Positions 4,442 to 36,895 of a DNA stretch of 36,895 nt are shown piece after piece. Location of the stretch: sequence record NC_010153.1. The stretch is one strand, 5' to 3'. The notes beneath the pieces are model-generated. The model searched no databases. It had not been told where the DNA came from and saw only the letters and a program-made list of their open reading frames with translations. A program made the position numbers and the translations under genes. Every line of letters starts with the position of its first letter. Positions within the stretch are counted from its first letter, which is position 1.

Positions 4442-4502
4442 TGTTTTATAGTAGCACATTCTAGAATTTAAGTTTTTTATTCCCCTTGTTCTAGTGTTGT
4501 TT

Positions 4503-4688
4503 ATGAGAGTCTTTGTTCACGTTGAGGGTGTTGTAGACGTAGAAGAATCTTGTAATGATGAGTTGGAATGTCTTCTGATATACTCTGAAATGCTTGAGAA
4601 GTATGGTGATGAGTTAGGTTATTGTTACGGACTGAGTTTGCAAGAAAGAGTTAAGTGTTCTCATGGATATGTGGAGATAAAAAGGTAA
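4503..4688 (+). CDS. Small acidic Cys-containing protein, about 61 aa
   Basis: ORF track (ATG 4503); fills the gap between minus-strand genes; protein-like composition. Confidence 0.55.
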   Translation: MRVFVHVEGVVDVEESCNDELECLLIYSEMLEKYGDELGYCYGLSLQERVKCSHGYVEIKR

Positions 4689-4700
4689 AAAAATTTATTT

Positions 4701-5246
4701 TTACTTTAATGCCTCATACTGTTTTTTTAGTGATAAGAGCTGGCTAGGGTGTACAAGGACTAGCATTGGTTGCGGGTAGTCGGATTGTTGGTATGCTATC
4801 CCGACGATTACGGCGCCTTGTTTTAGCTTTGGTACCACTGATCTCAATAACGAGTAGTATACTCCTTGTGATGTTGAGAATAGATAGACTTCCTTCTTCT
4901 TACTATTTATTTCCTTTACTAGTTCAATTGGTAGCGTTTGTTGGTCTTGTATTACGTTGGTTATTTTTTCTATTAACTGATCGTCAGTAATTACGTATCC
5001 GTCGATATAACTCACCTGTCCTGCCTGGTTAGTCTTATTGAATATGACGTCCCTAATTTCCACTTTCTTTACAATTAGCAATTTCCATACGTACTTGTTT
5101 AGATTTTCTCTCTGGAATGGTAACACAAATTCTTCCGATTTTGCTTCCTCTTGTAATTCTACTTTTTGTACTTGTGTTTCTTCTGGCATTTCGTCAGTCT
5201 CTTCGTCTTCTTTCAATTCCTCTTTTATTTTGCTCTTTTCTACCAT
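4701..5246 (-). CDS. Hypothetical protein, 181 aa (acidic N-terminus; possible ssDNA-binding protein)
   Basis: ORF track; SD GAGGTGGTGA; lies in the helicase/nuclease operon. Confidence 0.8.
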   Translation of the reverse strand: MVEKSKIKEELKEDEETDEMPEETQVQKVELQEEAKSEEFVLPFQRENLNKYVWKLLIVKKVEIRDVIFNKTNQAGQVSYIDGYVITDDQLIEKITNVIQDQQTLPIELVKEINSKKKEVYLFSTSQGVYYSLLRSVVPKLKQGAVIVGIAYQQSDYPQPMLVLVHPSQLLSLKKQYEALK

Positions 5247-6528: not shown

Positions 6529-6647
6529 ATGTTGTAGTGTATTTTTGAGATATATAAATTTTTCTTTAGCCGAAAAACGGAAGAATCTTTGTTTTCGTTC
6601 TTTATGAAGAGAAAAAGGGAAAAATAAAAAAAGGGAATGACTTTTAA

Positions 6648-7319: not shown

Positions 7320-7369
7320 ACTATCCCCTCCACTTATAAATTAGGAAAAAAGGATATATAAATGTTTCT
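7317..7369 (-). promoter_or_regulatory. Promoter/5'UTR cassette shared with the gene at 8660-9013
   Basis: ggatatataaatgtttct is identical at 7352-7369 and 9044-9061; catactatcccct is identical at 7317-7329 and 9011-9023. Confidence 0.8.
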
Positions 7370-7445: not shown

Positions 7446-7931
7446 TTAAGCTTCAGAAAGTTTTATGATTCCAAACCCTTTGTTCTTTTTTGCCCCTATT
7501 TTCAATAAAATCGGTAGTTTTATTTCTTGATTAAATATCAGTGTGGTGTTAGTCTTTGATCCTGCAATCAAATATTCATAGTTTGTCAGTGAATTGACAA
7601 CTTTCCTTGTTCCTATTCTCACATAATCTTTGGGGAATGTTATTATTCCTGAAACCACTGCATTTTGATATTGTGGGTATTGTGTTCTTAATGCTCCAGT
7701 TATAGTAAATGATGGTATGATGATGTTGCATAATGCGTCTCTGTCAAAGGCACGGTCTACATGGTCAATAAGTTCATGAAATTCTTCAGGGTAGCACTTC
7801 TTTAGATCTTGCAATTGTAATTTTTTCATCGCTTTGTTGGGACTCAGCGAAGGTGCAATCACTGGCGTTAATATTTCGATTATAATATTTTTCGTAAAGT
7901 TGTTGTTTTGTTTATTGTTAGTTTGTGCCAT
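7446..7931 (-). CDS. Minimal RAMP-superfamily (Cas7/Csm3-like) protein, 161 aa
   Basis: Three RAMP hallmarks in order: beta1 IIIEILTPV; VD59RAFDRD...IIPSFTITGALR (cf. Csm3 D..vrd...IPGSSLKGxxR); C-terminal G-rich loop IG146AKKNKG152FG154IIKL. Confidence 0.82.
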   Translation of the reverse strand: MAQTNNKQNNNFTKNIIIEILTPVIAPSLSPNKAMKKLQLQDLKKCYPEEFHELIDHVDRAFDRDALCNIIIPSFTITGALRTQYPQYQNAVVSGIITFPKDYVRIGTRKVVNSLTNYEYLIAGSKTNTTLIFNQEIKLPILLKIGAKKNKGFGIIKLSEA

Positions 7932-7953
7932 ACGTTTATATTAGTAGAAAAGC

Positions 7954-7968
7954 TATATAAGCTTTTTG
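7954..7968 (-). promoter_or_regulatory. BRE-TATA promoter of the RAMP gene (probably leaderless)
   Basis: Minus strand AAAAAGCTTATATA ends 22 nt upstream of ATG 7931. Confidence 0.7.
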
Positions 7969-8012
7969 CGAGTGGTTTTCGAAAACTTTATAAGATTCTG
8001 AGTGTATATTTT

Positions 8013-8111
8013 GTTGCCCGAAAGAAGATGAGGGCGTGAGAGTTGCGATTTATGTCATCGTTGCTATTCCTCTTGACGTGAACCCCGGCGTTGTGGGGCG
8101 ATATGTCTTTT
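8013..8111 (+). ncRNA. Putative small RNA 1 (8 hexamers, 8036-8083)
   Basis: TGCCC/GGGCG 5' stem; T at 8037, 8043, 8049, 8055, 8061, 8067, 8073, 8079; CCCC/GGGG 3' stem; T-run 8108-8111. Ends are inferred. Confidence 0.72.
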
Positions 8112-8147
8112 ATCCGAAAGTTTTATAAGATTCTAAGCGCATATCTT

Positions 8148-8252
8148 ATCGCCCGATAAATGATGAGGGCGTGAGAGTTAAGGTGTATGTTATCGTTATT
8201 TTGACCGTTCACATGACCATGAACCCCGGCGTTGTGGGGCGATAATTCTTTT
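8148..8252 (+). ncRNA. Putative small RNA 2 (9 hexamers, 8171-8224)
   Basis: CGCCC/GGGCG stem; T every 6 nt from 8172 to 8220; 3' stem; T-rich end. Ends are inferred. Confidence 0.75.
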
Positions 8253-8291
8253 CTTTAACGAAAGTTTTATAAGATTCTAAGCGCATATCTT

Positions 8292-8385
8292 ATCGCCCGA
8301 TAAATGATGAGGGCGTTGTGATTTGTGTTGTTATTACGATACACGTTCTCATGAGCCCCACTTCCGTGGGGCGATATGTCTTTTT
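8292..8385 (+). ncRNA. Putative small RNA 3 (7 hexamers, 8315-8356)
   Basis: Same 5' stem; T every 6 nt from 8316 to 8352; perfect GCCCCAC-ttcc-GTGGGGC hairpin; T5 at 8381-8385. Confidence 0.75.
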
Positions 8386-8423
8386 CATGACGAAAATTTT
8401 ATAATATTCAAAGTTAAAGTGTT

Positions 8424-8520
8424 ATCGCCCGATAATAGATGAGGGCGTTGCGATTCGTTTTGCTTTTGTGGTACACGTTTTCATGAACCCCACGGGGGTG
8501 GGGCGATAATTCTTGTTTAT
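8424..8520 (+). ncRNA. Putative small RNA 4 (7 hexamers, 8447-8488)
   Basis: Same 5' stem; T every 6 nt from 8448 to 8484; CCCCAC-gggg-GTGGGG hairpin; T-rich tail; no in-frame start codon near the putative 5' end. Confidence 0.75.
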
Positions 8521-8659
8521 TCCCTTTTTTTCTCACTTTGCAAATATTTTTACTATTCTGGACTTTGAAAAATATTGAAAGATAGAAGAAAGAATAAAGT
8601 AGAAAAAATATCCAAAAAGTGAAAAAAATGAAGTATAAAAAATAAAATAGGGAAAAAAA

Positions 8660-9013
8660 TCATTTGACTTGAATCCATCCTTTGTTACTTTTGAATACGT
8701 AGAAATATGTGTCTTTCCATTCTTCGTGATCCGAGTCTTCAGTTACTTTTATTACAACTTCTCTTGTTTTTGGAATTATGGCAACGTCTCTTACTAACGT
8801 TTTTCCGTAATTCTCTTCTTTCTCTTTCAATGTTATTGCGATAACGTCTCCGTATAGTATACTGTATTTCCTAACGAACCAGTCGAAATTACTAGTGTCG
8901 TCTATTGTCTCTATTTCCAGAATAAAGTTTCTCTCCGGCTCATTTTTTTCTGCTTTTTGAATTAATTCTTTTAGTTCTTCTTCGCTTATTTCATTATTTA
9001 GTTCCTGTTGCAT
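8660..9013 (-). CDS. Acidic hypothetical protein, 117 aa (anti-defence candidate by context)
   Basis: ORF track; promoter/SD cassette identical to that of the 223-aa gene. Confidence 0.85.
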   Translation of the reverse strand: MQQELNNEISEEELKELIQKAEKNEPERNFILEIETIDDTSNFDWFVRKYSILYGDVIAITLKEKEENYGKTLVRDVAIIPKTREVVIKVTEDSDHEEWKDTYFYVFKSNKGWIQVK

Positions 9014-9187
9014 ACTATCCCCTGCTAATAATATATAGCAAATGGATATATAAATGTTTCTCTATTATATTCTCTTTTTAAAGAGAGGGGGATATTCTCT
9101 TTTTCTCCTTTCTCTGAAAGAAAAATTGGATTGATAATAGTATCATGATTTTTGCTTTAAATAGTATTACTGTGTAATTATCTAATT

Positions 9188-13266: not shown

Positions 13267-13635
13267 ATGCAAGTCCTACAAGTAGTCAAGGAAAAGCCAA
13301 AATTAAGTCAAGACGTGAATTTTTTAGCATCGTCAGTCTACGAAACCCACGACTTGAGAGACAAGATAAAGCCTGGGCAAAAGTTCGTCATTAGACAGGG
13401 CGATTTAATCGTGGCAAACTACTCTATAGACTATCCAAGAAGGCACGGATTACGTTCTGTAGACCCAGTAACGGTGAATATCAATGGAAGGTTAATTGAT
13501 GTGTTTAGAGATTCTCATTTTATTCTACATACTGAAGAGTTTATGTCAATATATCATTCCGAACACGGATTAGTGATAATACCAGCAAAGGGACAAAGGT
13601 TTAGCTACTACGTTATTAATGAAGCGATTGATTGA
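13267..13635 (+). CDS. RQGD...HxEH motif protein, 122 aa
   Basis: VIRQGDLIV, SHFILH, IYHSEHGLVIIP, C-terminal ...AID. Confidence 0.85.
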   Translation: MQVLQVVKEKPKLSQDVNFLASSVYETHDLRDKIKPGQKFVIRQGDLIVANYSIDYPRRHGLRSVDPVTVNINGRLIDVFRDSHFILHTEEFMSIYHSEHGLVIIPAKGQRFSYYVINEAID

Positions 13636-13669
13636 AAAATTTATATATTTTTTTTCCTTTTATCTACTT

Positions 13670-13946: not shown

Positions 13947-14858
13947 TTAAAATTCGAATATTTTCGTTTTATCATCAAGTTGATAAATTTTTTTATACAC
14001 ACTTTTTATCTTCCAGTACATCATATATCTCGGAAGCCTGACACACCACATTCTGTCCGCATAATCAATCCCACAAAGTACAGCTTCTTTGAATAAAGGA
14101 GTGTACTGGAATATAAATTTAAGAAGAAGCTGATTTGACTTATCATGATCAACGTCGACAAGAATTAGACCGTTCGGTGGAAATAGCCTACCAAAATTTA
14201 TCTTATTGTGGTTGAATTCTAGTACATTTGAGAATGACCACGTCTCAGGTTTTGCGATGAGCCTCAGTACTTTTCTATACACGTTAACGTCAAAGTTTTC
14301 TCTCATTATTCCTTTCTGTAGTAACATTCTCATTACGTCATACTGTAATTTTCTGTTTTTCAAGAGAATGTACTCGCTAGTTGACATTTTCTCGAATTTT
14401 TTCTCAAAATAAGTTACATCTTTTCCATTTATCCTCACGATCCTGAATCCTGACAGGATGTCTAGGAAAATGTATCTTTTAGTGTTTTTGTCTGTCGCTA
14501 TTATTTCTAGATTCTCGTCGTTAAGTTTGTAAAATGAATTATTGTAAATCACTCCATACACTTTTTTCCCTATTTTAAAATTGCACCCGAGGAATGAATT
14601 CAGGTAACGTGCTTCAAATAAACTTTTCTCTCTGGTGATGTTGTTGACGACAATCTTAAAGTCGTTTTTTCTCTTGTAAACGTCGACCCTTGTTTTCACG
14701 ACGTCAATTGTCAACTTTCTCTCGTCGCTTTTCACGATTTTTACTGCAAAATCTGATATATTGGACACGTAGTCTGTCACATAAACTTCGTTAACATCTA
14801 CTTCGTTAAACTTGTTTAATATCGTGAAGACGTACGGAAAGACAATAAGATATTTCAT
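13947..14858 (-). CDS. Hypothetical protein, about 303 aa, paralog of 12183-13205
   Basis: C-terminus VLCGIDYADRMWCVRLPRYMMYWKIKSVYKKIYQLDDKTKIFEF; ATG 14858 forms an ATGA overlap with the upstream RHH stop. Confidence 0.85.
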   Translation of the reverse strand: MKYLIVFPYVFTILNKFNEVDVNEVYVTDYVSNISDFAVKIVKSDERKLTIDVVKTRVDVYKRKNDFKIVVNNITREKSLFEARYLNSFLGCNFKIGKKVYGVIYNNSFYKLNDENLEIIATDKNTKRYIFLDILSGFRIVRINGKDVTYFEKKFEKMSTSEYILLKNRKLQYDVMRMLLQKGIMRENFDVNVYRKVLRLIAKPETWSFSNVLEFNHNKINFGRLFPPNGLILVDVDHDKSNQLLLKFIFQYTPLFKEAVLCGIDYADRMWCVRLPRYMMYWKIKSVYKKIYQLDDKTKIFEF

Positions 14859-36479: not shown

Positions 36480-36895
36480 AATACAAAAGGTAGAACAAAA
36501 AATAAGATAGAGAGAGCAAATGATATAGGGCACGACGACACGAGATACAGACTGAGCAAACGAGAGCAAATGACGAGGAACGAAAGACGAGAAACGAGAG
36601 ACAAAGAAAGGGAAACAATGACATAGGGTACTACGAACGAAAATACGACAAACGATAAACAAAAGAACGGGAAATGAGAACGAGAAACAATGACATAGAG
36701 TACTAACGAACGAGACGTGAAGAACGAGAAAATGAGAGACGAGGAACGAAGAAGGAAACGATGACGTAGGATACTAACGAACGAGAAACAAGAAACGAGG
36801 AAATGAGAAACTAGAAACTAGATACTAAATACGAGATACATGACACGAAGATACGAGATACTAGATACGAGATACTAAGGAACTAGATACTAGAC
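36480..36895. repeat. Right subterminal low-complexity region with ~72-nt degenerate tandem repeats
   Basis: (A/G)ATGACRTAG.(G/A)TACTA.CGAACGA at 36617, 36689, 36760 (looser copy at 36519); many ACGAGA words; CTAGATAC at 36818, 36861, 36883. Confidence 0.8.

Follow-up and report, generated by a model that had tools for sequence, protein, structure and literature searches.

The closest described counterpart of the locus analysed here is VIPR, which combines a viral single-RRM RAMP protein (Vipr) with adjoining RNAs of about 100 nt, the vrRNAs, which are expressed and co-purify with Vipr (bioRxiv 10.64898/2026.04.26.720920,.720927, 2026.10.15.759431). Each vrRNA consists of 9–16 pentanucleotide repeats, in which GGY is conserved and NN is variable, and of a structured tail; Vipr protomers polymerise along it, hiding GGY and presenting NN, and the particles silence competing elements by means of a one-base-skip code (bioRxiv 10.64898/2026.04.26.720920,.720927). 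In the VIPR preprints the family was collected by PSI-BLAST seeded from X1U2U4 and comprises 670 Viprs, mostly viral and with archaeal viruses among the cases; all vrRNAs described there are built on pentanucleotides, and the repeat classes given in the methods are five-letter only (YNNGG, NNNGG, YNNNG and NNNNG). The reference VIPR locus of phage SUSP1, which we inspected, contains clear YNNGG runs.

The sequence studied here (the window) is the complete linear 36,895-bp genome of Acidianus filamentous virus 7 (AFV7; Betalipothrixvirus pezzuloense; AM087122/NC_010153). Its ORF161 and the array of four units beside that gene resemble VIPR in being virus-encoded, in joining a small single-RRM RAMP with a G-loop and a thumb-like hairpin to several RNAs of about 100 nt (predicted in AFV7) in the intergenic DNA next to the gene, and in the absence of cas genes and of a CRISPR array. 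The likeness extends to a tandem short repeat in which conserved and hypervariable positions alternate, with cores that differ between units and strains, and to a conserved structured end that caps the repeat tract, represented in AFV7 by a 3' hairpin that covaries. In contrast, the AFV7 repeat is of 6 nt (U-K-N-N-N-R, three conserved plus three variable positions) instead of the 5 nt of VIPR, the units add a conserved 5' hairpin to the 3' one, every unit is equipped with an archaeal promoter and a terminator of its own, AFV7 infects a hyperthermophilic crenarchaeon, and neither a target nor a skip rule was found for AFV7 in 187 kb of virus genomes or with exact patterns in IMG/VR. At the sequence level, ORF161 is not significantly similar to the Vipr profile of the SUSP1 clade either: when the 25 sequences of the ORF161 family were compared by hhalign with a profile of 25 sequences from that clade, the result was Prob 6.7% and E 0.0054, over the N-terminal strand and helix only. 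As judged from sequence features, the AFV7 locus is VIPR-like in every testable feature except the 6-letter repeat, the 5' hairpin, the promoter per RNA and the protein profile.

Compared with class 1 CRISPR crRNA systems (Csm3, Cmr4, type VII Cas7), AFV7 has neither a direct-repeat/spacer array nor adaptation genes, and no Cas5, Cas6, Cas10 or Cas11 genes (Cas6, Cas5 and Cas10 were not found among the AFV7 ORFs scanned). Moreover, crRNAs have no base requirement at every sixth position, whereas in AFV7 the U is invariant and its neighbours are constrained, and the AFV7 RNAs would be made singly, with no precursor to be cleaved. Another comparison is with virus-borne mini-CRISPR arrays and RNA anti-CRISPRs, which duplicate the CRISPR repeats of the host and depend on its Cas proteins. 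Like the AFV7 array, they are short non-coding loci with repeats, they occur in viruses that infect the same hosts, and an inter-virus or anti-defence role has been proposed for them; the AFV7 units differ in carrying distinct hairpins of their own and in being accompanied by their own RAMP.

The reading that we favour, with somewhat better than even confidence, is that the four units are individually promoted RNAs that load onto the mini-RAMP ORF161 as a VIPR-like guide system. The data on which it rests are the anatomy of the sequence, covariation in each of the two hairpins, the 6-nt code of the cores, the RAMP fold of ORF161 and the co-occurrence of gene and RNAs.

Organization of the array and its promoters

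The array lies in a 728-bp gap without annotated genes, between ORF161 (7446–7931, − strand), a predicted single-domain Cas7-like RAMP transcribed divergently from the array, and ORF117 (8660–9013, − strand). A coding reading of the gap was ruled out, as its longest ORF is of at most 43 aa. Four head-to-tail units (7979–8520, + strand) start 135, 144 and 132 bp apart, and all of them are described by a single parsing expression that runs through a BRE (GAAA plus two bases), an 8-nt TATA box, a 19-nt spacer, two bases, GCCC, a 12-nt loop (GA, five variable bases, R-ATGA), GGGC plus one base, a core of 40, 46, 34 and 34 nt in units 1 to 4, YRTGARC, a CCCC...GGGG hairpin, CGATA..TC and a T-rich tract. 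The loop-plus-stem word occurs in the four units and nowhere else in the AFV7 genome, and the array is absent from every other sequenced lipothrixvirus. At both ends of the genome there are short tandem repeats of 7, 22 and 50 nt (36781–36894 and 186–232), which are probably the repeat-bearing terminal regions of a linear genome.

The promoter of unit 1 (7981–7994, + strand) is composed of the BRE GAAAAC and the TATA box TTTATAAG; counted from the start of the TATA box, −6 is G and −3 is A. Its predicted RNA of about 96 nt would span 8016–8111 (+), with putative start and end, and would comprise the 5' hairpin (8016–8035; GCCC, 12-nt loop, GGGC), the hexamer tract (8037–8084), the 3' hairpin (8083–8098) and a tail plus T-run up to 8111. 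Unit 2 has its promoter (BRE and TATA, assigned on sequence) at 8116–8129 (+) and a predicted RNA of about 102 nt with putative ends at 8151 and 8252 (+), made up of the 5' hairpin (8151–8170), the hexamer tract (8172–8225), the 3' hairpin (8224–8239), the tail CGATAATTC and a T-run. For unit 3 the corresponding BRE and TATA are at 8260–8273 (+), and the RNA, predicted at about 91 nt and probably extending from 8295 to 8385 (+), contains the 5' hairpin (8295–8314), the hexamer tract (8316–8357), the 3' hairpin (8355–8372) and a tail plus T-run. Finally, unit 4 has a BRE and the TATA box TTTATAAT at 8392–8405 (+), and its predicted RNA, of about 86–105 nt and placed at 8427–8520 (+) with both ends presumptive, is formed by the 5' hairpin (8427–8446), the hexamer tract (8448–8489), the 3' hairpin (8488–8503) and a tail with interrupted T-tracts.

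Five close homologues of ORF161 (59–84% identity) were found, on short metagenome contigs, and all five contigs carry one to three homologous units directly upstream of the gene and divergent from it, in the same layout as AFV7. The alignment used here contains 15 units, four from AFV7 and 11 from these contigs. Scans of IMG/VR and JGI metagenomes with hairpin patterns gave chance matches only (unrelated GC-rich or freshwater contigs), and ORF161 relatives were not found by protein-pattern scans of IMG/VR, JGI metagenomes and GTDB genomes.

An earlier note on this DNA had pointed to a constant distance between the TATA box and the first base of the stem. This holds in all four AFV7 units, where the 8-nt TATA box (TTTATAAG or TTTATAAT; at 7987, 8122, 8266 and 8398) is followed by exactly 19 nt and NNGCCC, and it is equally correct that the spacer sequence varies between units, most strongly in unit 4. 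Despite this drift in sequence, the spacer is free of indels in 14 of the 15 aligned units and is 1 nt off in the remaining one. All 15 BREs have A at −3 and 13 have G at −6, which are the positions preferred by TFB in strong promoters of Sulfolobales viruses (PMC11065993). The first base of the stem is a purine preceded by a pyrimidine in every aligned unit, and the T-rich tract after the 3' hairpin is kept across the units of six related viruses.

The promoter word GAAANNTTTATAW is present in eight copies in the 36.9-kb AFV7 genome, against 0.13 expected; four of them are in front of the units and another three in front of ORF109, ORF223 and ORF117, which are nearby. The RNA genes look like members of a single group of strongly promoted, monocistronic genes. 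BRE/TATA words of this type were located outside the array at 6552–6564, 7356–7368, 9048–9060 (−) and 13634–13646 (+). A scan with a sigma-70/intrinsic-terminator model, which is not applicable to archaea, returned one terminator-like match only.

The same promoter word precedes ORF109, whose ATG is found 30 nt from the start of its TATA box, and leaderless mRNAs are common in Sulfolobales. If the ORF109 mRNA is leaderless, transcription of the units would begin at the G of GCCC, at 29 nt from the start of the TATA box. By this calibration the most likely starts are 8016, 8151, 8295 and 8427, 3 nt further downstream than those predicted in the earlier note (near 8013, 8148, 8292 and 8424). The proposal made there that each unit is an independent cassette gains support, by inference, from the BRE/TATA, fixed spacer and T-tract found per unit across six related viruses, and the presence of a BRE/TATA and a T-tract in each 132–144-bp unit argues, as had been suggested, against CRISPR-style processing from one precursor. 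In any case, individual promoters for the units are confined to the AFV7 clade, since a distant relative represented by two contigs (L040 and L041) has three promoter-less head-to-tail units; such promoter-less arrays in relatives show that individual promoters are not essential to the RAMP-RNA system.

Two local hairpins in the predicted RNAs

The earlier note had also proposed a two-state RNA that toggles between a closed panhandle, formed by 5' UUAUCGCCC with 3' GGGCGAUAA, and an open two-hairpin form, thereby controlling the access of protein to the core. The pairings on which this proposal was built are real: ATCGCCC can pair locally with GGGCG, the 9-bp complement TTATCGCCC/GGGCGATAA is present in units 2 and 4, and the 3' hairpin keeps its CCCC/GGGG stem with loops TTCC and GGGG, G.U replacing A-U in units 1 and 2. 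Both the local and the 9-bp pairings share bases with the 3' hairpin. The covariation check that had been suggested on homologous loci came out in favour of the two local hairpins and against the panhandle.

In the two-hairpin form, five pairs show compensatory change among the 15 units, a number reached by none of 500 shuffles, and 92.7% of the cells are paired, compared with at most 65% when the partners are slid, although these cell counts overstate the number of independent events because the 15 units go back to a small number of ancestors. Independent examples of compensation are the replacement of G-C by A-U, together with a U-A closing pair, in the third unit of contig L036, and of C-G by A-U in contig L038; in the second unit of L036, a C-G pair of the stem has become U.G. 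The 3' stem is extended or rewritten in relatives, as CCCCGU/ACGGGG or as the 9-bp CCCUGCCCA/UGGGCAGGG of L038, and across the wider family the 5' stem is rewritten as GCCC/GGGC, ACCC/GGGU, GCCA/UGGC, AGGGG/CCCCU, AGGGU/ACCCU or UUCCC/GGGAA while the loop GAU..GAUGA stays constant. The G.U pairs are consistent only with an RNA of the + strand. An RNA of the − strand was ruled out by its weaker folds and by the G.U pairs turning into A.C.

For the panhandle, none of the pairs has changes on both sides in the 15 units, a result identical to that of the shuffles (500/500). The stem changes in L036 unit 3 and in L038 preserve the local hairpin and destroy the panhandle. Moreover, the panhandle pair G39-C140 is broken in 3 of the 15 units. 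C to G changes at the panhandle partner are found in units 1 and 2 of contig L034. The change C8240G, at the panhandle partner of unit 2, is dominant in one metagenome run and common in two more, and no compensating change accompanies it among the differences listed for the metagenome contigs; these variant data come from contigs of four hot-spring or vent metagenome runs of one study, aligned to the array.

Folding energies give the closed form some support, as unconstrained minimum free energy folding of the AFV7 units picks the terminal stem and, when the leader is taken into account, the panhandle of units 2 and 4 is favoured over the two-hairpin form by 3.6–6.5 kcal/mol at 37 °C. At 75 °C, near the host temperature, it is the two-hairpin form that is better, by an average of 1.6–1.9 kcal/mol over 13 units, and under constrained folding the energies of the two forms come close to each other in units 2 and 4 of AFV7 alone, and there only on condition that the leader UUAUC is part of the transcript. 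A start at the G of GCCC would leave the panhandle with at most four pairs, removing five of its nine, so its outer half is probably located upstream of the transcription start. In addition, the ends are not cross-complementary in distant relatives (L042). Taken with the covariation, these results do not support a two-state RNA, and we regard a panhandle switch as improbable: on the aligned sequences its complement, real as it is, behaves like a side effect of having two G/C-rich stems and a conserved tail, and not as a selected state. The open two-hairpin form is the functional fold in what we consider the best explanation of the locus, held as a whole with the same rather-better-than-even confidence as the guide reading of which it is part. 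In practical terms, modelling and probing of the RNAs should assume open two-hairpin molecules starting at the G of GCCC, and not panhandle switches.

The constant loop could instead make the units L7Ae-type K-loop or C/D-box-like RNAs, whose GA...AUGAUGA loop would be bound by the L7Ae of the host and which would serve to guide modification or as chaperones. AUGAUGA, a perfect match to box C, is found in units 2 and 3, and all units have GA...GAUGA in the loop and RUGA ahead of the 3' hairpin. Archaeal C/D box sRNAs, in contrast, are defined by RUGAUGA, CUGA, a terminal stem and a K-turn within 50–70 nt, whereas the box C-like word is limited to two of the four AFV7 units, which contain no CUGA box D and no terminal stem adjoining the boxes, and RNAs of about 95 nt far exceed that length. 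By inspection, the possible registers of the loop give no tandem sheared G.A pairs next to a canonical stem, and the Rfam search of the units produced nothing relevant at the gathering threshold, nor any match of this kind with E up to 10. We consider this explanation very improbable.

The repeats could also act at the level of DNA, as protein-binding sites or an origin and not as genes, given their tandem arrangement inside the 728-bp gene-free gap and the palindrome TTATCG-CC-CGATAA at the 5' end of units 2–4. However, the G.U wobble substitutions keep the stems on one strand only, the BRE/TATA and the T-tracts are strand-specific, the stems covary while the loops are fixed, and a 6-nt phase with an invariant U does not fit the helical repeat of DNA. 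A DNA element is, if anything, even harder to credit than a K-loop RNA.

A six-nucleotide phase in the core

When 14 units were read from the base after the 5' hairpin, U occupied the first position in all of their 103 hexamers, at a U content of about 0.45. Position 2 is K (G/U) in 74% and position 6 is R (A/G) in 74% of the hexamers, positions 3–5 being variable, and the phase of the U extends into the conserved UGAAC that precedes the 3' hairpin. Core lengths in the family are 34, 40, 46 or 52 nt and the gaps in the alignment are of 6 or 12 nt. Period 6 is significant and no other is, period 5 included. The units of L040, next to a protein 35% identical to ORF161, have the same U phase in 6/8 to 7/7 of their hexamers.

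In the metagenome contigs the flanks of the units are retained and the cores are replaced by other sequence. Within AFV7 7932–8660, many short contigs have shared flanks and different cores, and assemblies break there; from the breaks and the varied cores together, the array appears to be highly polymorphic in nature.

The guide reading envisages the four units as separate + strand genes for small non-coding RNAs of about 90–100 nt, or about 86–105 nt going by the positions of promoters and T-tracts, each of which would be driven by its own strong BRE/TATA promoter and would most likely end in the T-run after the 3' hairpin. The RNA would open with a 5' hairpin of 4–5 bp and a conserved 12-nt loop (GA, five variable bases, R-AUGA), continue as a single-stranded tract of 7–10 hexamers (U, mostly K, three variable bases, mostly R) and be closed by the 3' hairpin. 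By analogy with Cas7 backbones and Vipr filaments, one copy of ORF161 would bind each hexamer, holding the R-U-K bases and presenting the three variable ones, and the hairpins would set register and ends. The resulting particle would recognise its target in a nucleic acid, probably one belonging to a competing virus or to the host. What we infer in this scheme is that the units are transcribed, where the transcripts end, that ORF161 binds the RNAs and that they act as guides. Its most specific version is put forward tentatively, at somewhat less than even confidence: a hexanucleotide-coded VIPR-like system in which a 161-residue Cas7-like protein reads U, with the flanking R and K, every six bases and presents triplets. 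Such a system would be a natural intermediate between the code of VIPR, with five letters, and the Cas7-crRNA backbone of class 1 systems, with six, and would operate at about 80 °C in a crenarchaeal virus with guides made from individual promoters.

Should the RNAs indeed load onto ORF161, AFV7 would be the first cultured archaeal virus in which a VIPR-like system has been worked out, and the system would be the first with a six-letter repeat, the same period as that of CRISPR Cas7 backbones. It would then be directly relevant to the idea that the RAMPs of CRISPR are descended from guide-RNA systems of viruses, and would provide a very small, heat-stable protein-RNA pair to test.

A role without guiding was considered as well, in which the RNAs, with or without ORF161, would mimic crRNA-Cas7 backbones and titrate or poison type I/III complexes of the host. 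RNA anti-CRISPRs are known in phages, which counts for such a decoy, and ORF161 resembles Csm3/Cmr4, which the Sulfolobales hosts use. The locus is, moreover, placed among monocistronic genes with the same strong promoter word, which is a predictor of anti-defence genes in PMC11065993. Against it, hypervariable cores in strict alternation of conserved and variable positions fit information-carrying guides better. The 5' hairpin and the tail of the units are also, we presume, unlike the CRISPR repeats of Sulfolobales. We consider a decoy or anti-CRISPR unlikely.

Possible targets were searched for with 14 cores and 12 pairing rules (positions 2–6, 3–5, 2–5 or 3–6, with 0–3 skipped target bases) in 187 kb of co-occurring or related viruses (AFV7, AFV3, ARV1, 50 kb of ATV, AFV2 and the LAV2 fragment). 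No rule was clearly above shuffled cores in this space, the best z being 2.4, and four exact gapped patterns of the type 'three read, one skipped' had no match in IMG/VR. The best match, of 16 of the 18 triplet bases of unit 3 with one base skipped, is at AFV7 14635–14657 (+), inside ORF337, and is within chance after multiple testing.

ORF161 and its relatives

ORF161 matches folds of the Cas7 family, resembles Csm3/Cmr4 and is a stand-alone minimal RAMP (a single RRM, G-loop and thumb-like hairpin) that is found outside any CRISPR-Cas locus. Pfam searches with its family gave matches to RAMPs in 8 of the 25 members, all of them sub-threshold. An HxDRxFxR motif, the E of YEY and a G-rich loop (G..K-G-x-G) are invariant in all 25 members, corresponding in ORF161 to residues 57–64, E119 and residues 146–154 (G..KGxG), respectively. 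These residues are candidates for a U-binding pocket or for catalysis, and ORF161 is the probable protein partner of the RNAs.

Five more distant relatives were examined, and in three of them there are hairpin-loop units beside the gene. The homologue of L040/L041 (35% identical) is accompanied by five units. Their stem is AGGGG/CCCCU or AGGGU/ACCCU, the loop being GAU..GAUGA and the 3' hairpin GACCCC/GGGGUC; three promoter-less units follow the gene and two more are upstream (L040 4508–4800 and 2939–3110; L041 3095–3400). Such an arrangement would point either to one transcript covering several units or to processing, and RNA cleavage is a testable activity for the protein with its invariant His/Asp/Arg motif. 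The homologue of contigs L042–L044 has one unit, UUCCC-GAUCCAAGAUGA-GGGAA. In the third case, Los Azufres archaeal virus 2 (LAV2; KF547927; L033 3476–3990), eight repeats of about 20 nt (consensus approximately ATCCGGATCCATGAAGGAC), spaced 53–72 nt, are located directly downstream of orf18, a 30%-identical homologue of ORF161, without a promoter per unit, which is a CRISPR-like layout beside a solo mini-RAMP. On the contig of P0007 (L045; 54% identical), no such unit was found in the 160–190-nt flanks. As far as the sequences indicate, RAMP-RNA pairing is common in the ORF161 family and not universal among the loci examined, L045 having no units.

The fifth of these relatives, L050, and one further locus contain other elements near a family member. 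Downstream of the RAMP homologue of L050, in a contig binned to a Zestosphaera MAG (4499–4720), a GNRA-type hairpin from which the AUGA loop is absent lies about 25 nt beyond each of two BRE/TATA-like sites. Upstream of the family member P0025 (L051 1680–2320), an 800-nt C/A-rich gene-free stretch contains four copies of GCUGAAAGRUGAAGCAC, spaced 156–267 nt, which possibly represent a further type of unit.
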